Source of the DNA: Phallusia mammillata
Lineage: Eukaryota
Assembly: GCA_965637545.1 (NCBI GenBank)
Contig: OZ281498.1
Coordinates: 8,122,001-8,186,000 of the forward strand
Direction: 5' to 3'
DNA: 64,000 bases
Positions 19,701-36,728 of this stretch are shown here, piece after piece; position 1 is the stretch's first letter; every line of letters starts with the position of its first letter. The notes below the pieces were generated by a model. The model did no database searches. It was not told the origin of the DNA and saw only the letters and a program-made list of their open reading frames with translations. Made by a program: the position numbers and the translations under genes.

Positions 19701-22015
19701 AATGGGGAGATTACCAGTAATGTCGAAACATTTTATTGTTTTTTATGCTATGTTGTATACTGTACTTTGACAAAATTGTGACAGGGGCCACATTAAAAAG
19801 GCAAGCGGGCCGCAGGTTCCCCACCCCTGCACTAAAGTTTGCAGCAAATATAATTCCTTTTCTTTTAGACTGGATCTTCCGAATGACATTGATGTTACAC
19901 TTGGCAGTGAATCGCCTCCATCGCCTACAGGTTCACCCGAGCTCAACATCTCAAGCCCACCCCGTCATCAGAGCCTCGATTCGAGACTTGCAGACTTATT
20001 TAACAACGCAACACCAGGCGAAACTGACAAACCAATAAGTGACAGTGAATCTGATGTTGGAGAGATTCCAAAGGATCCTGAAACTAAACCTCAAATACCA
20101 CAAACATCTACATCCTTGCTCCCTGGTTTAGGTGGGCTCACGGAAATAACTTCTTCAATTCCTGGACTCAACGCTACACCATCTGAAACTGTATCTATCA
20201 TTGCACCAATAAACACTACACAAAGCACTGTGGAAGGAAACAGCAGTCACGCTATTCCTGTGATTGGTGGGAGTTTGCGTGCTTTAACTTCAACTACACA
20301 AGATGGTTCATCAACACCCACTTTGGATGAAACTCCATACACAGCGCAATCTAATTTGTCTGCCAGTAGTAATTTTACTGGTATGCCAGCTTTTCTTTCA
20401 CCGCCCAGATTTAGCGGGGGCGATCCTTTGAGTTTCTTATCAAAATTCATGGACCAGGCAACAAACAGTAATTTACCCCTCAATGAGTCCATTACAACCG
20501 AACAAACATCTAAACCGAACACTGAAAATCATGTATGGCCACACACAGAAAAAGCGAATCCTGTCAGCACCAGTATACCATGGATTACAAGTGACTCAGT
20601 AACTTTACCAACTGAGCCATCAATTCCAGTTCCTCCTTCTTGGGACAGCTTTAACAAAAGTGTAGCAAAGATGACACAACCCTTTCCAGCTTCTAGCATT
20701 GCAAATTCTGAGTCTATCAACACATCTGTCCCATTACTGAAACATGAACATCCTGATGACTTACATGAGGAAACTCCAACAAAGAAAGGAAGATGGGCAG
20801 ATAGCACTCATGAGGATACCAAATATGGGTTTGTAGTATAATTTGTGGTGAAATATGTGAACTGTACCAAATGTATGCATTGGAGAATTTTTGTACATTT
20901 GATACAAAGTTAGAGTATAATACTTTTTAGGGGCTTTACTTTTTACGTTTCACTAATCATCACTTTTGATAATCTGAAGCATGTATGAAATACAGGGATA
21001 AAAATTATAGAAATGAATGAAACCTGGATTTAATTTTTAACAATTTGGTTTGCATTTTTTTGACATTTTATTTACCATCCAAGGATATATATGTACCTTT
21101 AAGTGCATTAAATGTTGTTTAACTAGAGTAATTTTGGTATACATATTTAACTACAATATTTTTGTTTACAGGAAAGAACCATTAAACAGACAGGACAGTT
21201 TCCATGCAAAAATAGATGGCAGAAGAAACAGCAATCTCATCACCCTTTCTGGTCAAAGTGCAGACCAAAAACCAGTTACTACACCTACTGAGCCTGTCAG
21301 CACATCAGCTTATGAACCTATGGCCCACTTTAGGGACATCCTTCGCAGAAAATCAGCAGAGCACCCCAGTGCAGCACCACAAACCCAAATCGCTACAGAA
21401 CATGTAAAAAAGGAACCACCCGAGCCTAAAACTGAAAGTGAATCTGATGAAAGCGTAATGCATCTGTCAACACAAGCGGTTATAACTGGCCATAGAAAAG
21501 AGTTAAGAGACTTTAAAAATACACAAGACACGATGCCTGAAAATGATCCGCATAGCTCATCAGTGTATGTAGCTTCTGACAGCCAAGATGAAGCCTTTGA
21601 AATGGAAAGAGAGGTCCCCTACTCAAATGCGGAGTTTTTGCCTCCTCTGTCTCATCACCAGGAATACCATGAAGCTGAGTTACACCGAAACAACGGGATA
21701 ATGGCATCACCCATGCGGGGGCCGCCACCAGGACGAGTCCCAGTTTATCCAAGGGAACCGCACCCTGTGGGACCTCAGATTATACGCAGGAGAAGTTACC
21801 GCGAAGAAGACTTGCTTGACTACGAGTTAGGTTTGATACAAGAAGAGAGGCGAAGGGATGCTGCAATGATGGATTCGATTTTAAGCCACGAAAGACGTTT
21901 AATCCGTCCAGTCCGTCACCCACTAAGGCCTCGTATGCGCCTGAGACACCCAGGTCCAGCACCACCGCCGCGTTTTATGGGCCATCCAAGGCCGCCGAGA
22001 ATGCGGTACTACTGA
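13726..22015 (+). CDS. RPRD2: Regulation of nuclear pre-mRNA domain-containing protein 2 (CID + coiled coil + long S/P-rich tail), about 11 exons
   Basis: CID motifs [50 protein letters not shown]; [21 protein letters not shown]; DMEMSDDD; DGSSTPT.DE; Pro/Arg-rich end PRPPRMRYY. Confidence 0.88.
16801..17006. mobile_element. hAT-type MITE (same family as 7670-8348, opposite orientation)
   Basis: cagtggttcccaacc / ggttgagaaccactg; shared internal aaatagacactt segment. Confidence 0.7.
17904..18240. mobile_element. hAT-type MITE (cgtaccac subterminal repeats)
   Basis: cagtggttctcaa / ttgagaaccactg; degenerate TSD gcattggg/acataggg. Confidence 0.75.
19037..19222. mobile_element. hAT-type MITE, family A (reverse orientation)
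   Basis: Family-A TIRs; perfect TSD gttaagca. Confidence 0.85.
19237..19829. mobile_element. hAT-type MITE
   Basis: caggtgtggggaacct / aggttccccacccctg; TSD cagtaaag/cactaaag. Confidence 0.8.
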
Positions 22016-22605
22016 TGAAGAAAGATGCTACGTTTTCAGTTCGTTTGGAAATGGTGGGTCTTGTATTGTTTTGTTGCGTGCTGCTGCTTTTATGTTTATG
22101 TTCCAAACCACGTACGTGTCGTTTGCAACCGGAATGTATATACCTAAAATGAGTTTTTTTTCGGTAAAGATAACGAATTGTTCGTTTGCTTATCTTGCTC
22201 TGATCCGAGAAATGACAATTTAAGTGACAAAGGGCATTTAAAGACGAAGAAAACAAGGACTGCTTGTTCTTACAAGAAGAAGACGATTACAATAAAGCTA
22301 AATAAACATTTAAAGCGACGTTTTTAGCTTAGGAAAAGCTTCACAAATCGTGTAAGTTGTTATAGGACTGTTACTAACCAAAGACAAAAAGGTTTTGTGC
22401 TAACAAACCTCCTTTTAACAAAGTTTCACAGATAAATAATAGCGCCGAGGTTGCGAAGCATGGAGCAGTACGCCAACTGCCGACGTCCGTAGGTTTCAAT
22501 AAGTAGGGAAACAAAATAATTAAATGTAGTGTGTGCCAAATAGGCGCTTAAAATGATTTTAGGACATCCATTTAGCCCTTAAAATATAGGTGTTTGTTTC
22601 AAATT

Positions 22606-23007
22606 GGAATGCTTGCGAGACCAGCTGATTCGGTACAACCCCTGTAGCCTAATAGGCCTATGATTTATCGAGATATGCTGTGATCGCTGGTCTACATCGA
22701 CGCTTCAGGGCTGACCCAGTATGGGTTCATCTTAGCTGATACGATCGAACTGGTGATGCCCTGCTACGAAGCTGACATGTGCAGCACACAAGGCAGGCAA
22801 CGGTGTTTGTGATTCGACTTTCGACGGATTCTGCACTGAGCCTGTGTAGCTCAGTTGCTAGAGCGCGAGTCCTGGAAAGACTCCTGTCGCGGGTCCGAAC
22901 CCCACCGCAGACTATATTTTTCGTGCCTGTGTCTTGCCATATGGGAATGCTTGGAAGACCAGCTGATTCGGTACAACGCCTTTAATAGGCCTGGCGTACT
23001 ATGATTT
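22606..23007 (+). mobile_element. SINE-like repeat with an internal tRNA-like unit (22840-22913) and terminal redundancy (period ~338 bp)
   Basis: A-box tagctcagttgc, degenerate B-box ggtccgaaccc, cloverleaf-like stems and a following T6 run. ggaatgcttg..agaccagctgattcggtacaac occurs at 22606 and 22944. Homologous copy at 46575-46845 (-). Confidence 0.75.
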
Positions 23008-24481
23008 GTTTTAAACGTTAAGAAAATACGAAAGCAGATTGATTCCTACTTGCCTATTGCACACGGCGGTATGCATATTAATTGAGGGTTCCTGAATCCT
23101 TACTTGACCCCGTTTTAATGCTTTTTCTGCATAGTTGGTGTTTTGCCACTATGTACATTACGTAGGAACGGCTACAGCCAACATTAGATGGGATAAAACC
23201 GCGTTTAAGTTGTCAAAGTAAAGAACTGACTTAAAAGTTGTAAACAAACCACGTGTCCAAGCGTCAAGCATGAGTAACTTTGGTCCGCGAAAAAGTATCA
23301 CTCACGATAAACGTAGATATCACGATAAACGTAGTTAAATGTACGTGTTAATGTGCCAAAATATTGAAATATATGGCTAAAAATAGTAAGTTACGTGTGA
23401 GTAGATCACAAGTTCGTTAAGATGATGAAACTCGTCATCATTGGTAAATAATTGCTCTGATCTTTATAAGTTTGCTACGCTTCGTTGCTTACGAAGCAGA
23501 GGTGCTTGATTTTCAAGTGACGGCGTGAGCCAAGGGTTTGTCAAAATAGAAAGGTTTATATTCGTGGTTGAACTTTTCTGCTACATTTTTGCACACAGAC
23601 TTAGATAAACATTTAACGCGTTTTTAGAAGCACTACTATTTTGACTGGGAGAACGCTAGCAGCCAACGTTAGTTTCAAATAATTGTTGATTGTTTTGTAC
23701 AAATTTCGTATTTTACGTTAGGAGGCTATAGTAGTGTTTCACATAAGTCATTTTTGTAAACACCTTGTGCCCATTTTAATGCAATTAAATCAAGTTTTGG
23801 GAAAATTGATCCCAAGCAAATAAACAATTCTGTCATATGTCATTTCAGATGTTGAACCCATTGTTGGTTTAGTAAATTTCTCTATGCATGGGCTGCAAAA
23901 GTGGAAACCAATATTGTTAAGATTTGGAATTGGCAACTTGCGAAACAAAACGGTAGATAACACATTTTTTGCCATTTGTGGATGTTTGTATGAGATAAAT
24001 GGCCTTACGGCCAAGACAAATTTGTAAACCTTTTTTTCTTTACAAATGAATGGAGGAGTTAAAACAATAAACATATACAGTTTGGTAAAATGCAAGTTAG
24101 TGCAGAGCAAGCAAAACTTATTGAGATGCACTGTTTTGTTTAGTCCCGATTAGGTTTGGAGTAAAAATATAAAATATCATTTATTGAATGTTAATTTAAA
24201 ATTTTCAATCAACTCAATCAAATAAAAAAACATGTAATTTTTTGGACAAAATTGCTCAACTTTAGGGGCTAAAATGTCTTATCATAAGAAGTTGACTTTT
24301 CAATCTGGTGTGTGCATTCAATTGTGACCATGCATGTCGCGTTTTACCTGCTACCCGCTTGTTTTTATATGCAATTTTTGCAGTGTTTTCAAAAACAACA
24401 ATAATCATAGCTTAAAACCATGCACAACCTGCAACATGTTTTTTTCTAGTAATTATTAAATATACAATTTTCAGATCAATA

Positions 24482-27400
24482 ATGGATACTGTAGAAATAG
24501 TAAAATTAGGTATTAGTGAAGAAAACTTGAAAAACCTCGACAAGCACTTTGCAACAAATAGTTACACCTGTGGCTTTAACCCTAGTGAAGCTGATAATCA
24601 ACTTGCATCAAAAATTTTGGACAGTAATCTTAGCATATCTTCATACCCAAATCTACAGCGTTGGTACGAACACATTATTAACTTGGGGCCACACAAACTG
24701 CCAAATTTTGTTGAGGTGTGTAGTATTTTTTATATTAGGTAAAAGGGTTAACATTATCCCGAGCAAAGTTGCTTGAGAAGAGAATATACAGAACATATCA
24801 GCAAAGTTTCTTATTTTTGAGAGTTTGAAACAATTAGGACTTATTGCAAATATATATATACCTGTTAAAAATAAATAAATAAAACTTGGTTTGTGCAAAT
24901 GACCTCAAAGCTTCTCTAGCAAGTGCAGAAAACTGTGGTTTGCAATGTTTGCTTCTTCTCTGAGAAATGTTTCTTCTCAAAATATAACAGGCATGTTAAA
25001 TACTTATCCAGGTTCAGCCAATGTAAATACAATTATTTTATGGAGATACCTTTGTCTTATTTTAAGTGTTTATATTTCCAGGTATCCCACCCAGTTAGAA
25101 AGTTGAGTAATATGGCTGACGTAGATAAAGAAAATGCTACCCCTCCAAAATCTGTTACTCCAAAGGAAAAAAAGCAAAAACAAGCAAAAACAAAAGGTAC
25201 ATATTGATTAAAAAAATAAATATGTGGGTTAAAGTATGTGGCTGCTGATTTTTGTACACATTAAAACATCTGGCCGTGTATAAGTTTGCGCTGGGTTTAG
25301 AAAAAAACACATAAGGTTTTGTTTACATGTGTGTTAAAGAATGCTGCAAGACTCATTACATATATAATTTGGAAATAAATAATTAGGAAATCGATCTAGG
25401 TATTATGCTCCTTAATGCAAACATCTTAATTTTGTATTTGGGAGGGTGGACCTTGCAGTATATTTGAAAAATTTGCTTTATAACAGGCGGAGGTGGAGGA
25501 GCTGGGATAAAAGAAATGCAACCATGGCCAGCTTACATACAGGAGAGACAAGAACTCTACGACAAACTAAAGTTGGAATGTGAGCAAATGCTCAAAGGTA
25601 TTTTTTTACAGCAGAAAAATGAAACCCTGGCTAAAACATTAAATTAAGCCATTCTGCAGAAATAACAAGATAGATTGATCCAAAATATTGCTTTGTTATC
25701 TTGTGACATATCTTGTGACATGACATAATACTTTATTCAGCCGAAACCCTTGGAAAAATTGGTCTTTGCAATACAGTATCCACATAATGTATTTCCAAAG
25801 TTACCAGATTTACATATAATGTCTACATGCGAAATAACACATTGAAAATATAAGCTGCCCTTGACTGCATGTCGCACAATAGGTAGGGTAAAAAACTTTA
25901 TAAGGCCATGGCTTACAATCCAATGAACACAGTGTGTGTAACTAAACTACACTGTGGGTGGAATGCTGCTTCTGTTCACTGTATTAAATTTGAAAATACA
26001 ATTTAAGCCCAAAATACACTGGCTGTGTAAACATTTTCAGAACGCCAGGAGACACAATCTTCACCCATCCAGATCACATTACCTGATGGAAAAGTTGTTG
26101 AGGGCCAGTCATGGATAACCACACCTTACACTGTAGCTCAAGGAATCAGGTGTATTTTACAGTGGCAAATGTATTTTACATTTTTTATAACTGCATAAGC
26201 ATTGATTGATAAGGTTATTATAAGGTATACAGACAAAGTATTCAAATTCTTTACAACACAACAAAAGTTTTAAAAAATTGACAACGAAAATATATATACA
26301 AAAGCTAAAATGTGTTAGGTGTAAATGGTTAAGCACACAAATGCTTAAAATTACAAGTAAAAATAACAAAAGAGAACATTTGGCAATGGTTTTTAGATTT
26401 CACAATACTTGATGAAAAATATGAATGAAAATAGTTTGACATAACCATTTGCATTGATTTTTACTCTTAAGTTCCTTACATGACTGCTGCTTTGTTTGAT
26501 TCTGCTGTGTCAAATTCAACCTCAGTATTTACATTACTGTCAAGCTGTTGGTTATTTTCTACAGAAAATTCTTCTTTACTGTCCCATGCTGCAGGCAAGC
26601 TGTCTTTATCATTGATTGACTTATCGTCAGAAGGGTCTTTCTGCTTGTCTTTCACAGCACCTTGCAACATGGATTCAAAATCACCCAGGATATCCATGTT
26701 AAGTTTCTCCAAGCCAACATGAGGCTCATCGGTCAAACTATCACTGTTTTGTCCTTCATCATTGCTTTCTGCTGGTGATTTTTCTTCTGCAAATTCTTTT
26801 GGAGGGAGGACAAACTCTTTTCCAAGGTCACTGTTGTCTTCAGTTTCCTCAGATTCGCTATCTGTGGATGATTCAGAGTCTTCTTTGTTTTTTTCATACA
26901 CATCAGCAACTGCAATGACTTGATTCTTTTCCTCTTTTGGATTAACCTCATGGATATCTTCATTTGGACCCTGGCTTTCATCGTCCGAGGCATTCTGATG
27001 TTTTGATTTAAAACTTGGTTGCTTGTTAACAGTGGCATAAACTGCATCCTCCAGAGGGTATTGAACTTTTTCCAATTCTTTAGCCACTTTGTCATTGTCC
27101 AATTCACTGGGGGAGTCATCTTTGTTCACATCTTCCTGGTCTTCATCTTCTACGACATTCACTGGTGTGATACTTTCACTTTCTTGCTTGTTTACAGATG
27201 CATAAACACCAACCTCAAAGTCTTCTGGATTTAAATCTTCCAAATTGTAACTACTTTCCATTGCTTTATCCTTTATTTGGGCCGGTGTATCAATTTCCAA
27301 TTCATCGTACACAGAAGGTTTTTCTGAAGTTGTTGCTATGTTGTTTTCAGCATTTTCCCGATCACTAAGACTATTTGCCTCAGCCACACATACTATTGGG

Positions 27401-30400
27401 GTCGCAATACTTTCCAACAAAGGCAATGTTGCATTTTCTGTATTTTCTTTTTCTTGTTCCCCAAGTGACTCCATTGGTTTTTGCATTCCTTCATCCCATT
27501 TTGGGCTTTCCCTCTCATCTGGCATTTCCTGTTCTTGTGCTGTCTCCTGAATCGGTTTCTTGCTTACTGAAGGCCTTTTCTGCAGTTTTTCCTTTGGAAG
27601 ATGGTCCCCATGGTCATAGCTTGCTTTGCTGTTGTACACAAATGCACTGGGAATAGGAGGGCGTTTTGCGAAACTCGTTTCTGCCGTTTCGTGTACATCG
27701 CTTTCTGGTTGCAGAGGCGAAGCAGGACTGGGTGGGAGCATTGATAAGCTTTCTGTAATTTAAAGGAATAACTAACAATTAACAGAAAAATATTACTCTC
27801 TAAATATCTGAGAAAGAAACGAACTATTTTGTGCATAGGCACTCAGCTGTGTGAAACAAAATTTTTAAATTACTGATTACAGCAACTCAAATAAGTTTTT
27901 CCTCCTGTTACCTGGTATATGTTTTTCTAATTATAGATTATGAATTGGAATGCAATAAAGCAATTAGATTAGATTTAGAATCTAATCTAATTTAGAGAGT
28001 GAAATTTTGAATTACTTATCTATATTTCAATGTACTTCCTAATAAGTGGTTTAAGTTGCATGCAGAGCTATCCATGTACACTACCTTTGTGCTTTTTGCT
28101 GAAAGTTGACGGTGGGATAGTGTTGTCATATTCTGATGCTCGTCTCGGTTGTGGCTGCGGAACAACTTGTTGGGCAATCGTTTCATTCCTGTAAGGATCC
28201 ACAACTTGTGGTACCTGCAGAAAAGTTAATTGGAATAAAAAACAAACATTCTCTATGTTTGTGTAGAGCAGGGGTCGGCAGCCTTATACAGTTGCTTAAA
28301 ACCAAGTCCCTTTGGGCCATACTAATTTTTCATGTATGTTTTTGTTCCCTTTACTGTTTATCATGTTGTTAAACCTTCCGAACTTTGGTAGTTATTTTTG
28401 TTAGGCTACTAGTATGCAGAGATACATAAACCAAAATACAACTTTAGGGACATTGATTTCTAATAGACTGAAATCTCAAAAACATTACAATAGTTCCGGT
28501 CACGTCTAAAACTGTGGGCCCGCTAGTCCCAGCACTTGGCACGCCTCATGCAAGTATAAAAACTGCGGGCCGACTTGATAAAGCCGAGGGCATGCCTGTC
28601 ACGTGTCATTAAATTTTGATTTCGACAATATCTGAACGGCAAGCAATGGATATAGTGGGCTCGCAGTTTTTCCTTCCGAGAGACGCGACAAGCACTGGAT
28701 ATGGTGGGCCTGCGGTTTTCCCTCCGAGAGACAGGCCAAGCAATGGATATATAGTGGGTCCGCAGTTTTTATACTTGCTAGAAGTGGGCCTGCAGTTATT
28801 CAATTGCATGGGGCGGGCCAAGTGCTGGGCCAAGCAGGCCAAGTGCTCCAAGTGGGCCCGAAGTTTTAGACGTGACCGCAATAATTCAGTTGTTTGGTTT
28901 TTAGAGTCCCTTATTGAAAAAAATGTCACATATTTAGACTGTTTACCTGTTGGTCATCAAGTTCAGATGCACCAAGAGCTTGATAGATTGGAATATCTGG
29001 TAGTGGTGGGTGTTGTGCTCTGGGTTGTCTTCTAACTGTTGTGTTAACTGGACTGGCAGCTGGTACTGCAAATAGTGTTTCACAATTATGCATTCATGAA
29101 CCTTTATGTTAATGCTGACAGGTAGTTTACTATTATCAAAATGTTAAAACTATTATCACCGGAAAAAAACAACACTTAATTGAAATGTGTTGAAACTGGA
29201 TAAATTTTTTTTTAAACTCCATACACAGATCTGTTCATAAGTGTAACGAGGAAAGCAACTGGCAAATTAGATGTAAAAAGTGACATGCTTATTATTGAAA
29301 TGTTTTAGCAAGTACTCTTGCCATCATCATTGATATTAGGAACCACATCAGTTACACCTGTTTATAACCACTGGATTAAATCTAGCAGAATATAACAGTC
29401 AAAAATTGCCTAAAAAGTGTCATGCCCTATTAATCGACTTTTTCGGCAATCACTGATGATTAAATCTATTTATGATACATTATTTCTGTTCATATAAAAT
29501 GCTTCTTAATGCCTTTTTCCTTTTTTACACTATCTTATATGTCTAATACATGATTCACAACAAAAATGTCCATTTTTAACGCCTTACCTTGAGGTGCATT
29601 TGGAGCCAAATATTCAGCTTCATATGGTGGTGGAAGAGTGCCTAAGTTTTAATAAGTCTTAACATTAGTATTTCATGACATACCAGTGTGGATATTAGTT
29701 TGTGTTTCAAAATACCTTGTCTTTGCAACGATGTATTTATTAGTCTAGGTTCTGGAGCAGTTGGCTGTGTTTCATTCTAAAATACAGTATTTGGTAAATT
29801 GACAAAATTCTAAAATGATAAAATCAACTTCGCATTCATACACTATTGGTTTTGATGCTGCTTGTCAATGTGGTGGGAACACAAGTACTACTGGAATTTT
29901 GTTAGTTGGATAAACAACTAAATTTGGAAAACCAAAGCCATTTATCATGAAAATTGAAATCACACTACAAAAACATAAAAACCTGTTCTTGTAATTCTGG
30001 TTGAAAATCTGGATTTGTCCTTCCTCTATAATACAAGGAATTAAAAAAACACATTTAAAAATTTGCATTACAAGGGATACCTGTCATTGTCTTCTCTTCT
30101 AACTTCGCGTCGAGCTTTTCTTCTGGCGTATTTAATCACCCGTGTGTCCCAGAAAACTGCACTTGTCACCACAAATGACACAACAAATACTGCCCCAGCC
30201 ACTAAAAGAAAAAAAAGCCTGGTATCACAACCTAAAAGTATTATTTTTGCAAATCAAGTTCGAAGATGTAAAAGTACTGGGCTTGTTGGGCTGGTTTGTT
30301 ATAGGAGCATAAAACAGCAACTACATGTGACATATTGCCTAAAAGTCAGCAACGCCATTAGATTTATTAAAATTATTTGTTGTGGATTGTATTTAGACCA

Positions 30401-33400
30401 CTAAGATATATCTGTTATCAATTATCTAAACAAAATTGCAATGTAATACAAATTAAACAAAGCAAATGTAAATCACATTAGGGCAAAACCCTACCTGCAC
30501 CATAAGTATAGTACAAAATCGTCAAAGCAGATGGTTCCAACACCATTTTGTCATGCAAACTTGCTATCACTGTACTTCTCAATAAAATATATCAGAAAAT
30601 TATAAACTGTAAATCTCGGAACAAAAGATCTTTTAAACACAACAATAAAAAATTGCCAGCTTTTATCAAGTTTTTTGTTATGTTCAGAAAAAACTCTCAC
30701 AAGACAAGACAAAAAAACAGACTCTCAAAAAAAAGACTTTGAAAGCTTTGTCTGTCAAATCCCCCTGATGCTATATGGGGTCTGGGTCACATGAACTTTT
30801 TCTCTTTTTACGCTTGAGCAAGTAAAACTCCTCTTTTTTTGTGAGGTGCAATCGTGCGTCAAACTGTGGGTTGTGTTGCAGTTGTGCGATACAAAAATTA
30901 CTGTTGACATGAAAAGTTTCATAAATTGCCATTTGCATACATATATAACACAAACACAAATGTACAAACTTTACTAATGAGGATATAAAATCAAAAATTC
31001 ATTTTTAAATTTTTAAATTCTTACCATTTTTTTGTTTATTTCATTTTTCAACACAAAGATACATTTTTTTGTTTGATGGTGCAGCTATACCTTAAAAAAT
31101 CCTTCTTATATTTATTTTTTCTGTTTTTGCAGTCAAGGGTTGGCTGACAGCTGCATCGTGGCCAAAGTGAACAATGTAGTTTGGGATCTCGATCGACCAC
31201 TGGAGTCTAATGCCAAACTTCAATTGCTCAAGTTTAATGATGATGAAGCACAGGTCTAGTTCATTAACACAAATATCACAAATATAAAAACATGTTTTGT
31301 CACCAATTACGCACACAGATTTCTTAACGTAAAACCAGACTAAAAATATAAGAAGCAAATATACCTGTCACAAAGAATGTTGTATAATAAATATTACAAC
31401 AAAAATGTTAGGTACATGACTGCCTTAATGTGGTGTGCTGGTAATAAATTAACACTTGTATTGTTGTTTTTATAAACAAAATTTAAGAAACAAATCACTA
31501 AAAACTAGGCCTTGGTTTAATGAGATTTTACTAAATTATCCACTACACTTGGTGAATAATTATTTCTATATGAGTACATCAAGTGCTTTTTGTTGTAACT
31601 TACATCTTATTAGATCTTGCTTCTTGGAAACAACAGTTTAATTCACTTTTTTTCTATTAGGCTGTTTATTGGCATTCCACTGCCCACATTCTTGGAGAAG
31701 CGATGGAAAGAACGTATGGCGGTTGCTTGTGTTATGGACCTCCTATCGAACAGGGATTTTATTATGACATGTTCATGGAAGACAGGTAAGAAATCAACCA
31801 AAAATAACAATGCTAATGTTTATTCGAAAAACAGCATTTTTGTTAATTACACTATGTAACAAACACCTTTCTATTGTTTTGATATGTGACTTTCAGACAA
31901 CAAAACTGATAAGATTCTGCTATTTATAAAAAAAATGGTTGCATTTTGACGTGTGTTTTGTTTATTAGAATTGTGTCGGACAAAAATGATTTCCCAGCTG
32001 TGGAAGGAGTCATGAAATCAATTCTGAAAGAAAAACAACCTTTCGAACGATTGGAAATCACAAAAGAAAACCTGTTAAAGATGTTTGCCTACAACAAGTT
32101 CAAAGTAAGCCAACTTTATATTCATAAATTACACCCTAATACATTTTTTGTGTTCTAAAAGGTGCGAATTTTGAATGAGAAAGTCACCACTCCCACCACA
32201 ACTGTATATAGATGTGGACCACTGATTGATCTTTGCAGAGGTCCACATGTTCGGCATACTGGAAAAATTAAGGCTTTTCAGCTGTACAAGGTAGCTAACA
32301 GTTTTGTATTAGATCCTTTGTTCTGAGCAAAAAGACACAAGCCATTATTTGAGTGTAGAAACATTAAAACATTCTGCTGATCGTCTGACAAAAGAATGAC
32401 GACAAAAGTAACTGTTGCAACCTGGTGATGTTTTGCACTCAAATACTGTCTTGTATCTTTTTGCTGAGAATATTTAGAACCATATGTTGTATACCTGAGA
32501 TCCTTTGTTGTTTTTTGTGCGAGAAAATTGCTAAACCAAATACTCTTTCACAGAATTCTGCAACATATTGGGAAGGGAAACAGGATATGGAATCGCTACA
32601 GAGAATTTATGGAATAAGTTTTCCTGACAAGAAGGAGCTGAAACAGTGGCAACAATTTCAGGTCTGCTTGACTAACACAACACAGTAACTTTCTGTTGTA
32701 AAATTACAACAAAAAAGCTTTAAAAATATGTTTTAAAATTACATATTTTTATACAACTGAGTTTCTTTACATAACAAGTACAAAGTAAAATTTTGGGCAG
32801 CACCTACAACTTACATCCCTTTCTGGGCAGAAGTAATTGTTGAGATTTCAGGTGGTAACTGCTTTTTTGTTGTTCAGGATTTGAATATTGTAAGTAAAAA
32901 ATCACAGCTTTTCATAATTTTAAACCCAAGGTAATACTCGGAAAAATCTCAGATGAAACTCTGTATATAAAAAAGTCTTTCCACTAAACATTTTAATGAT
33001 GTTTGTGTTTGTTATAAACTTGATTGTATTCTAGTGACATACATAACAACATGAATAGATGTAAAAAGCGACATGCTTTATTGTTCCAACTTTTCTGCAA
33101 GTACTCATGCCATCATCAGTGACATTATACCCTCCTACTCAGCTGAAACAATGATTATTCTTTTCCATAGGAAGAAGCAAAGCAAAGAAATCATAGGAAA
33201 CTGGGAATGGAACAAGAATTATTTTTCTTCCATGAATTGAGTCCTGGAAGCTGTTTCTTCTTTCCTAAAGGGGCATTTATATACAACACACTCATGAAAT
33301 TTATCAGGGTATTTCTTGCTAAGTTATTTAAAAAAATATCAGGGTTTTATCAATAATATGACACAAGTGAAGTATATTTTTTTTCATTCACATTTTATCA

Positions 33401-36400
33401 ATTTTTTCGTTAACAGTTTCATCAAAATGCAAGGACACTGAATAACATTTGCTATCAAGTCAAGTGTCCTGTTGTTCAATAAATAATGCTTAAAGTGCAC
33501 TGACTCTGTTTGTAACAGACTACACAACTTTATAACATTTGTGTTGCTTTTCAGGAAGAGTACAGAAAACGTGGATTTCAAGAAGTCATTTCTCCCAATA
33601 TTTACAATGCCAAACTGTGGATGACTTCTGGACACTGGCAGCATTATGCGGAAAATATGTTCAGTTTTGACTCAGAAAATAGTAAATTTGCACTGAAACC
33701 TATGAACTGTCCAGGACACTGGTGGGCAAAATGAAAAATTTGTTTGTTGTTGCAAAGTATTAGCTTTTTGAAATGTTTTTGCTTTTGTAGTTTGATGTTT
33801 GCACATCGCAGTCGTTCATGGCGCGAACTTCCATTGCGTTATGCTGATTTTGGGGTTCTGCACAGAAATGAATTGTCTGGTGCCTTAACTGGACTTACCA
33901 GAGTGAGAAGGTTTCAACAAGACGATGCTCATATTTTTGCTATGCCTGAACAAATTAAACAGGTAATATAGTGGTGTAGTTTGTTGATGCCTTCAAAACT
34001 GTACCAACTGCCACATAAAACACAATGTACCTAGGATTATTTTTGAAGTCTATAATTAAGACATAATTACAAGAATTGAAAAAAATCACCAAAAAATAAT
34101 TTGCGTCAATATTGCTATACGGACAAACATTGGTAATCGCATAATTCCCTTAATTGCTTAGAGATCTTAAATCCCAACCATAGCCATTTGTTGGGAAAAT
34201 TATACTATTAACTTTATGCAAAAGCTAAGCTGGCAACTGTTTGTGAAATTAACTTCATTTATTTGCCAACTATGTCATATTTGTTCAAACATGTAATTTG
34301 ATCATAAATTTGAATCTTTTTTCAGGAAATGGCAGGAGCTTTGGATTTCCTTAAAACTGTGTATGGAGTGTTTGGTTTTACCTTTAAACTTTTCCTCTCT
34401 ACTCGCCCTGAGAAGTTCCTGGGTGACATTGAAATGTGGAATGATGCTGAAAAGGTTTAACAAAATTCTGTTTGATTTATTGCCGACTTTATGACAAAAT
34501 TTTTAGTGATGTCAATTAATTTATTGTTTTTTTAGTTGTTAAACTGGATTTGGTTAATCCGGATCTTTGTCTAATTCAGACAAAACTTGATGTAGAAATA
34601 ATTTGTAATATGGCAAGGCTTTAAAAAAAATTCCCAAACGACTCCAGATTAACCAAAGTTTACTGTACTGTACAAAAGTGTTGTGCAAATGATTTCAAAG
34701 CTGTACAAATTCTTTGTTTAGTTAAGTTAACAAGTAACTTTTCAAATGACATCTCTCTGTTTATACATAAAAGTGTCTGTATAATGCTGAACTACATTTT
34801 GGCTCATTTTGTATGGGTAATCTCAATTATAAAAGTTTTGTATGATTAATTTTAATTGTTCTAGCAATTGGAAGAGTGTCTTGATGCGTTTGGACAGCCA
34901 TGGCAGTTAAACCCAGGTGATGGGGCTTTCTATGGACCAAAAATTGATATTCAAGTAAGGGCAAGGTTTTGGTACATTAACAACTATATACATTGCATAA
35001 GACTTTAACTTTTTAGATTATGGATGCATTACGCCGACCTCACCAGTGTGCCACAATTCAGTTGGATTTTCAACTTCCACTTCGATTTAACCTAAACTAT
35101 GTTACGTAAGTTTTTCTGTGGAATACCTTGATGCCTAAAATCTCAAATAGCTAACAGACCAATACAAATTGTATATTCTCACTTCTTTCAAAATGAGAAA
35201 TTGTTTTTTTTTTAGTTTTTAGAGTTTGTGGTACTTCTGAAATACATTTGAAAATAATGAAATGTCGTTCAGCTCCTCACCACACATCAACAGCAATTTG
35301 ACCTTATTTTGTTTGTTTCTTTCACTTTTATACAAAAATCTGGTTCTAAACATGTAAACAAGAATACTGTTGAGTTTCACAGTTAGTTATGTTTTTAGTG
35401 GTGAAAACGATGAAAAGAAGAGGCCAGTCATAATACATCGAGCAGTACTTGGTTCTATGGAAAGAATGATTGCAATTCTTACTGAAAACTATGGTGGAAA
35501 GTGGCCTTTGTGGCTTTCTCCCAGACAGGTAGAACTTTTAAACATATGATCATGCACCAGAACGTCAAATGTTCTGTTTGGTCGAACACCAAGCATCTTT
35601 CGATGATGATGGTACATTGCTGATCACAAACATTACCATTTCTACACTAGTTTTGTAGCTTTCCGAGGCTCCTTACGTTACCTGTAGTGTATTTGTACAG
35701 GCCCCAGAAGTAGGTTTTTCTTCACTATCTAACGAATTTAAAAATTCTATTTTTGTTCTTGGATACCCTTTCGAACACTAGTTTCATATGTTAGCAGGGC
35801 ATTAATATGCAAATTTAATGCTCGGGCCAGTTTGTGCAACCACTTGGCCAAGCACCAAGCGTCAAAAATACTCAGGTTCTGGCTCGGCTCATCTCAATCG
35901 GTGTGTGTACTTACAAACTGATGCTATATTATTGCAGGTGATGATTTTGTCAGTGTCAGTAAAATTTGATGACTATGCAGAGTCTGTAAGAGCAAAAATG
36001 CACGCAGCAGGATTGGAAGTAACACACCAATATGACCATGGGCTGACTTTGAATAAAAAAATTCGAAATGCACAATTGGATCAATACAATTTTATTCTTG
36101 TGGTTGGGGAAAAGGAGCAAGCCAATGGCACAGTCAATATTCGCACTAGGGACAATAAGGTCAGTATTTAAATCACCTAACATGTCTAAACTTTAATATG
36201 TATAAATATGCTATTTTATGTACCTTTTTAGATTGCAAGTTTTATTTTATTTTATTTTAAAATGACTTAAATGTGCATTACACATATATACAGTAAACCT
36301 TGGTTAATCCAAATCTTCGCCTAATACAGATAGAACTCAGGGTACAAATGATACGTATGTGGTAAGACTTGCTCTGATAGGCATCTGTTAAGCTTCGCCT

Positions 36401-36728
36401 AATCCAGGCACATTTTTGGGTCCAATATGGTCCACATTACCTGAGGTTTACTGCTCATATGCATAGCACCCATGCCTATTGTCATTGTTTCTGCTTTATT
36501 TTGATACAACTATACCTTTTTACTCTTAAGATACAATGTGTCCATTCTTAATAATGTCAGGTCAAGCGTTGATGCACATCTTTTAAGTTTGATCTATTTT
36601 AGGTACATGGAGAGTTTAAACTGGAAGCGGTAATCAGTCGCTTGTTGGAGTTGGTTGAATCTCGACACAAACATGCAGAAGACGATTTTGGGGAGGGTTT
36701 AAAGCCCAATGAAAATGCTGCAGCCTAG
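24482..36728 (+). CDS. TARS1: Cytosolic threonyl-tRNA synthetase; long form with N-terminal GST-C-like exon (24482-24715), short form from ATG 25112
   Basis: [12 protein letters not shown] domain (ITLPDGK..WITTPY..A.GISQGLAD...VWDLDRPLE), editing WHSTAH.LGEAME and [109 protein letters not shown]; last exon 36603-36728. Confidence 0.96.
26476..30546 (-). CDS. Nested antisense gene in a TARS1 intron: ~618-aa single-pass (type III) transmembrane adaptor-like protein; exons 30546-30495, 30201-30081, 30025-29983, 29776-29716, 29641-29588, 29065-28947, 28214-28085, 27752-26476
   Basis: Eight exons joined by GT-AG introns in phase into 1857 nt: [35 protein letters not shown] (TM), then ARRKARR, then a long acidic disordered tail with many Tyr motifs. 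Confidence 0.85.
28497..28878. mobile_element. MITE with 17-bp TIR CGGTCACGTCTAAAACT and internal gtgggcc(c/t)g tandem motifs
   Basis: Perfect TIR pair; repeated ggatatagtgggc-like units inside. Confidence 0.75.
36291..36453. mobile_element. Tc1/mariner-like MITE (TIR CAGTAAACCT)
   Basis: ta|cagtaaacct...aggtttactg; related fragment at ~34545-34645. Confidence 0.5.

Follow-up and report, generated by a model that had tools for sequence, protein, structure and literature searches.

Why should a gene for threonyl-tRNA synthetase (ThrRS) be preceded by an exon that resembles part of an elongation factor? The question is raised by a 64,000-nt stretch of Phallusia mammillata DNA (here called the window), in which a sequence-only reading had noticed, upstream of the ThrRS gene, an exon (24482-24715) encoding a domain similar to the C-terminal part of glutathione S-transferases (GST-C-like) of the eEF1B type, joined in frame to position 25082. 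The coordinates proved correct. From the ATG at 24482, which lies in a strong context (A at −3 and G at +4), 78 stop-free codons lead to a phase-0 donor (GAG/gtgtgt) at 24715, and the acceptor at 25082 (ttccag/GTA) is followed by 10 open codons and a further ATG at 25112. Transcript evidence was taken from the Logan contigs of four transcript-like runs from four studies (X1, X5, X6 and X7), placed on positions 21300-27200; such contigs prove presence, not absence, and the runs are presumed to be RNA, their contigs skipping GT-AG introns. The 24715/25082 junction was present in X1, X6 and X7 (three studies), and in X5 the upstream exon (exon 1b) was present while no contig covered the junction. 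The possibility that the exon is expressed as a separate 86-aa transcript, which the sequence-only reading had itself considered, is unsupported, since no contig of the four runs was placed on the intron segment 24846-25042 into which such a product would have to read.

Judged by its sequence, exon 1b encodes a GST-C half-domain of the eEF1B-alpha type, as had been proposed. Homology searches and folding were run exon by exon. A profile built from seven tunicate-type sequences had as its top PDB chain 5dqs_D (E 8.8e-9), the N-domain of human eEF1B-alpha in the eEF1B-alpha/eEF1B-gamma complex 5DQS, followed by insect GSTs and AIMP3 (E 2.4e-4), and a full HMMER scan returned six close relatives, 40-47% identical, ahead of a tail made up of eEF1B N-domains and of exons without a name. 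The expected agreement with domain profiles was thus obtained with PDB chains, but not at the level of Pfam, where the 78-aa exon stayed below the cut-offs of both Arc1p_N_like (E 3.5e-5; 24.5 bits against 27) and GST_C (E 0.004; 17.8 bits against 20.7), which explains why the domain has not been annotated; the former model was nevertheless matched by all seven orthologous exons. No homolog came from a word-index search with the single exon, nor any match from two metagenome locus scans. The structure model (pLDDT 74) consists of four helices in a GST-C-like arrangement and aligns only with the C-halves of GST folds, including yeast GluRS-N, EPRS and AIMP3, with middling Z scores of 6-8 (up to 7.9); an Atlas shape search gave TM scores of 0.59-0.70. 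No thioredoxin-like N-half with a glutathione site was matched, only the C-half, and a six-frame scan with the module profile detected no other GST part. Without the glutathione-binding half, the module is a binder rather than an enzyme, and no transferase.

In other tunicates, where its occurrence had been raised as a question, the exon lies upstream of the ThrRS exons in the same order and phase in four loci (L001, L002, L004 and L005), whereas a fifth (L003) ends before them; all five come from metagenome assemblies and were taken as ascidian by similarity. An acceptor precedes the module Met by 1-7 nt in every ascidian-like locus, and in the four complete loci the donor is again in phase 0 and the common exon has 10-15 open codons ahead of a second Met, as well as an N/D-K-E-N motif. 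A further case is Ciona intestinalis, in which UniProt entry H2XM78, filed as a 97-aa stand-alone protein, consists of the module and the start of the common exon and is, from its sequence, a mis-split fragment of ThrRS. Although the linker ahead of it is not conserved, the second Met is kept in all ascidian-like loci; this speaks for its use as a start and makes ATG 25112 a candidate start of a short form.

Exon 1b is not the only 5' end joined to the common exon. Two more junctions into the acceptor at 25082, absent from the sequence-only reading, were found at 23952 (contigs of runs X5 and X6) and at 22053 (run X5 only, with 30 letters on the short side). Splicing of alternative 5' ends onto one common exon was therefore seen for three junctions, in agreement with the earlier view of the module as optional. 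The product of the first of these exons (exon 1a), together with the 10-codon linker common to all upstream exons, forms a 33-aa leader with seven Lys/Arg residues, no Asp/Glu and an Arg-x-Leu-Ser end; by its make-up it looks like a mitochondrial presequence, and it may serve in targeting, the moment of its best 18-mer being only 0.39. In the case of the second, an ATG (22051-22053) in frame with ThrRS ends exactly at the used donor, 36 nt past the stop of the upstream gene. Since this donor lies inside a CpG-rich zone that is likely to be the promoter region, the junction would stem from a distal first exon or else from splicing of read-through transcripts.

The 738 codons counted from 25082 give a GST-like form of 816 aa with exon 1b; the mitochondrial form would have 761 aa and the short form 728-739 aa (728 aa from ATG 25112). 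The main assembled path contained exon 1b in runs X1 and X7 and exon 1a in run X6, and in X5 the exon 1a joint was much deeper, which hints that the choice of the 5' exon depends on the sample, contig depth being no measure of isoform shares. The earlier proposal of a long and a short isoform from one gene is thus borne out as regards alternative forms, but the simple pair has to be extended by a third form, which bears the presequence-like leader, and possibly by a fourth start. There is probably a single, dual-targeted ThrRS gene with alternative N-termini (GST-like, mitochondrial and short). This one gene would serve the cytosol and the mitochondria, the N-terminus being set by the alternative 5' exon joined to 25082: (i) transcripts with exon 1a would give the mitochondrial precursor from the weak ATG at 23884 and, given the strong ATG at 25112, also the short cytosolic enzyme by leaky scanning, much as in the C. 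elegans gene named below, and (ii) transcripts with exon 1b would give the tethered form from its strong ATG. Single dual-targeted ThrRS genes are known from C. elegans (tars-1; PMC10196762) and Drosophila (PMC4826098).

The sequence-only reading had considered the module lineage-specific, and this part of it does not hold, since copepod ThrRS has the same module. A distant match (P0057) located 60 nt ahead of a ThrRS reading frame, in a locus with compact genes, led to a copepod-like ThrRS gene (L006:403-1480) that contains a short-form first exon, a GST-like exon and the common exon, all in phase 0; its neighbours are the genes for eIF2-gamma and mitochondrial GluRS. A search with this ThrRS returned 120 proteins, mostly copepod-like, 14 of which start with the module, and none of these 14 carries a GST annotation. 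The RefSeq isoforms of Eurytemora carolleeae ThrRS comprise X1 with the module, X2 with a presequence-like start and the short X3, and isoform X1 of Tigriopus californicus ThrRS also carries the module. A cluster of 870-aa arthropod ThrRS was recovered independently by the Atlas shape search (TM 0.61). The idea that the copepod exon is an internal cassette was rejected, because transcript-derived proteins start at the Met of the module exon. Seven crustacean-like ThrRS of 774-810 aa (P0124-P0129 and P0175) are long without having an N-terminal module; six of them show an extra Pfam match (PF12745), so that the added length is probably C-terminal.

The module was not found in the ThrRS locus of Capitella, which is bounded upstream by another gene, nor in the listed ThrRS isoforms (X2) of Amphiura and Lingula, and none has been reported for the ThrRS of C. 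elegans (PMC10196762) and Drosophila (PMC4826098) or for vertebrate TARS1 (PMC6794377). In a tree of the modules, those of tunicates (98/94) and those of copepods (95/89) each formed a clade; their union did not appear in the tree but was not rejected either (p-AU 0.50; 83 columns), so that one and two origins both fit. The exon layout differs, in that the copepod module replaces the first exon of the short form and the ascidian module is added before the Met of the short form. This difference, together with the patchy presence of the module, suggests two separate gains, in ascidians and in copepods.

These comparisons bear on the least flattering explanation of exon 1b, namely that a fragment of an eEF1B gene survives here as a relic, free to drift, and that its splicing is noise. 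Scores below the Pfam cut-offs would be expected of a relic, as would the low identity of the module among ascidians (38-47%, against 75-95% for the catalytic exons) and the fact that exon 1b is a minor path in two of the four runs. However, the open frame, the start Met, the acceptor close before it and the phase-0 donor are all conserved in six ascidian-like loci, the core residues are invariant, the exon forms the main assembled path in two runs, and copepods carry the same module. Conservation thus largely refutes the relic explanation, which we regard as very improbable.

What, then, would a conserved binding module do on ThrRS? It is known that eEF1B-alpha contacts eEF1B-gamma by segments D21-V29 and C50-I59 (PMC9458455), which map to residues 25-33 and 56-65 of the module. 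These two segments hold eight of the 16 residues that are invariant in the seven tunicate sequences, within 19 of the 78 positions (P 0.012), and none of the 22 ThrRS modules from tunicates and copepods departs from G31, D38, R60 and W61. Stacking of an Arg is essential in the yeast Arc1p-GluRS interface (PMC1557820), and this residue may be equivalent to the Arg of the module. The conservation of residues matching the contact surface of eEF1B-alpha makes docking on eEF1B-gamma our best guess: the module would bind eEF1B-gamma in the place of eEF1B-alpha, and ThrRS would hand Thr-tRNA to eEF1A, as proposed for ValRS. We lean slightly towards this interpretation.

Several observations weigh against it, or against the isoform scheme of which it is part. 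The conserved contact residues are also residues of the fold core, so that the sequence alone cannot single out the partner, and the same type of surface (interface 2) holds EPRS and AIMP3 together within the multisynthetase complex (PMC6760448). Foldseek placed eEF1B-alpha only at rank 29, with no significant match. In the relatives, the second ATG does not always have a strong context, and no presequence exon was traced in the other ascidian loci, where a relaxed scan gave candidates at chance level and a strict scan missed the positive control.

The shared surface makes docking on the multisynthetase complex the main rival. In this case the module would attach ThrRS to the GST-like domain of AIMP3, EPRS, AIMP2 or MetRS, in parallel with vertebrate TARS3, a ThrRS paralog whose presence in the complex provides a precedent (PMC6794377). 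AIMP3 is the next translation-related PDB match after eEF1B-alpha, Arc1p_N_like is the best Pfam model, the fold matches include GluRS-N, EPRS and AIMP3, and EPRS and AIMP3 pair through the same loop-plus-helix surface (PMC6760448). Nevertheless, the sequence and extent of the module fit eEF1B-alpha much better. By sequence it spans only about residues 97-165 of AIMP3, and it lacks the helices that form the canonical GST dimer interface 1; within the complex, EPRS and AIMP3 normally fill the interface-2 sites. We consider this attachment rather unlikely.

Less probable still is a role of the module in cis or towards itself, by self-association across or between ThrRS dimers, by stabilisation or by regulation of activity or location, with neither eEF1B nor the multisynthetase complex as a stable partner. 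In crystals, the GST domains of EPRS have been seen to pair with themselves through interface 2 (PMC6760448), the dimeric state of ThrRS would favour self-pairing, and the module occupies different positions in SerRS and HisRS genes (see below); the N-domain of eEF1B-alpha itself, however, is a known heterotypic binder, and the title of the work on a similar insert in CysRS, cited in PMC1557820, also points to an association with elongation factors.

Modules of this kind were also observed on other synthetases. In three loci (L007:382-768, L011:248-739 and L012:320-811) the 5' portion of a cytosolic SerRS gene, around the stretch for the N-terminal arm, encodes an eEF1B-alpha-type module; we read the hosts as nematode-like, and to our knowledge a GST-like SerRS has not been described. 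In two others (L008:475-1008 and L009:541-1074) the module directly follows the WHEP exon in a gene for HisRS and is flanked by an acceptor and a donor in the manner of a cassette exon. Related modules are present on a Perkinsus MetRS and, according to the Atlas shape search, in a cluster of diatom AsnRS. A 156-aa amoebozoan protein (P0036, Dermamoeba algensis) consists of this GST-like module and a coiled coil, which resembles the AIMP1/ArgRS leucine zipper; it is a possible adaptor between the two complexes.

The ThrRS chain itself (Table 1) comprises 17 exons from 25082 onwards (exon 11, 33555-33721), with AG/GT borders throughout and no internal stop. In one open frame it encodes a complete ThrRS of the eukaryotic cytosolic type, with an N-terminal helix, TGS, editing domain, class II core and anticodon-binding domain; one by one, the exons match the copepod-like ThrRS of L006, which has the Pfam families TGS, tRNA_SAD, tRNA-synt_2b and HGTP.

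Table 1. Features of the ThrRS locus (positions within the window)
Feature	Position	Strand	Description
CpG-rich zone	21800..23800	.	observed/expected 0.9-1.4, against 0.1-0.6 in the surroundings
Donor 22053	22040..22053	+	in the 3' untranslated region of the upstream gene; 5' border uncertain
Alternative 5' exon 1a	23849..23952	+	acceptor 23849; short upstream open reading frame at 23849; in-frame ATG 23884 (weak context); 23 codons
Alternative 5' exon 1b	24475..24715	+	acceptor 24475; ATG 24482; 78-aa eEF1B-alpha-type GST-C half-domain; phase-0 donor
First common exon	25082..25196	+	10-codon linker; ATG 25112 (strong context); M..D/N-K-E-N motif; Lys-rich tail
Remaining 16 ThrRS exons	25487..36728	+	stop at 36726-36728

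Upstream of ThrRS, positions 19900-22015 hold a low-complexity gene with an Arg/Pro-rich end and no Pfam match, different from the intronless SH3BP5 gene found in this place in L001, L002, L004 and L005. A repeat at 22600-23010, the two ends of which match, encloses a tRNA-Ser(GGA)-like sequence (22839-22914; ARAGORN); its pieces occur in many unrelated transcripts, and it is probably a tRNA-derived short interspersed element. A 5-kb ThrRS intron contains a nested antisense gene (26476-30546, minus strand) with an acidic open reading frame of 421 codons (26476-27741), for which no Pfam family scored above the cut-off and no contigs of the four runs were placed on 26422-27200.

Among the closest known systems is an insert of human CysRS (CARS1), present in a splice variant and reportedly of the eEF1B type, in work by Kim et al. 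2000 whose title names an elongation-factor-associating domain. This, too, is reportedly a GST-C-like module that splicing can add or omit, on a synthetase that does not belong to the multisynthetase complex, with a link to the elongation-factor complex; by that description, the present case differs in concerning a class II enzyme, ThrRS, and in that the module occupies an alternative first exon, in competition with an exon for a presequence.

With the N-domain of eEF1B-alpha on eEF1B-gamma (5DQS; PMC9458455) the module shares the extent of a half-domain, the motifs, the contact loop and the Arg-Trp helix, but it is fused to a synthetase and has no exchange-factor domain, and its binding to eEF1B-gamma is a prediction. 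ValRS (PMC4394549, PMC9458455) offers a parallel in its N-terminal GST-like tether, which is predicted here, and in the proposed hand-over of tRNA; in ValRS, however, a full GST fold of about 210 aa binds eEF1B-beta (delta) constitutively, whereas the present module has 78 aa, is optional and would bind the gamma subunit. EPRS and MetRS also differ in having a full GST-like domain with the interface-1 helices. TARS3/TARSL2 (PMC6794377) is a form of ThrRS that has an extra N-terminal interaction module and exists beside a plain ThrRS, but it is encoded by a separate gene and binds AIMP1 and ArgRS by leucine zippers. In C. elegans (PMC10196762) and in Drosophila (PMC4826098) one ThrRS gene gives, as proposed here, a long form with a presequence and a short cytosolic form from two ATGs, but no third, GST-like form has been reported for either. 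The same three-way choice of N-terminus is seen in the Eurytemora RefSeq isoforms, and the copepod records (Eurytemora and Tigriopus X1), which like Ciona H2XM78 have the module at the ThrRS N-terminus, carry no precomputed Pfam GST domain.

GST-like domains have been listed for GluRS/EPRS, ValRS, CysRS and MetRS, not for ThrRS (PMC8319005, PMC4394549). In agreement with the sequence-only reading, which knew of no such appendage on this enzyme, we found no description of a GST-like ThrRS in the literature searched, whose coverage falls short of most subscription journals. The conserved module on ThrRS is thus apparently undescribed, its sequences being already public but unrecognised, hidden by scores just under the Pfam thresholds.

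Reviews treat ordinary ThrRS as a free enzyme, and an optional mimic of eEF1B-alpha in two distant animal groups breaks this list. We tentatively propose, as a view that may well need revision, that the N-domain of eEF1B-alpha is a mobile docking exon which animals have added several times to synthetases that do not belong to the multisynthetase complex: to ThrRS in ascidians and in copepods, to SerRS and HisRS in further invertebrates and to CysRS in mammals. On this proposal eEF1B-gamma would be a second, splice-regulated hub, for which each lineage chooses its enzymes, and the ThrRS of ascidians and copepods could be switched between mitochondrial, free and eEF1B-bound pools. The difference between a tethered and a free enzyme would then amount to one exon of one gene, in tractable animals such as Ciona and Tigriopus, and this would offer a clean test of an old question, namely why elongation factors have ties to some synthetases only, and whether the channelling of tRNA matters.
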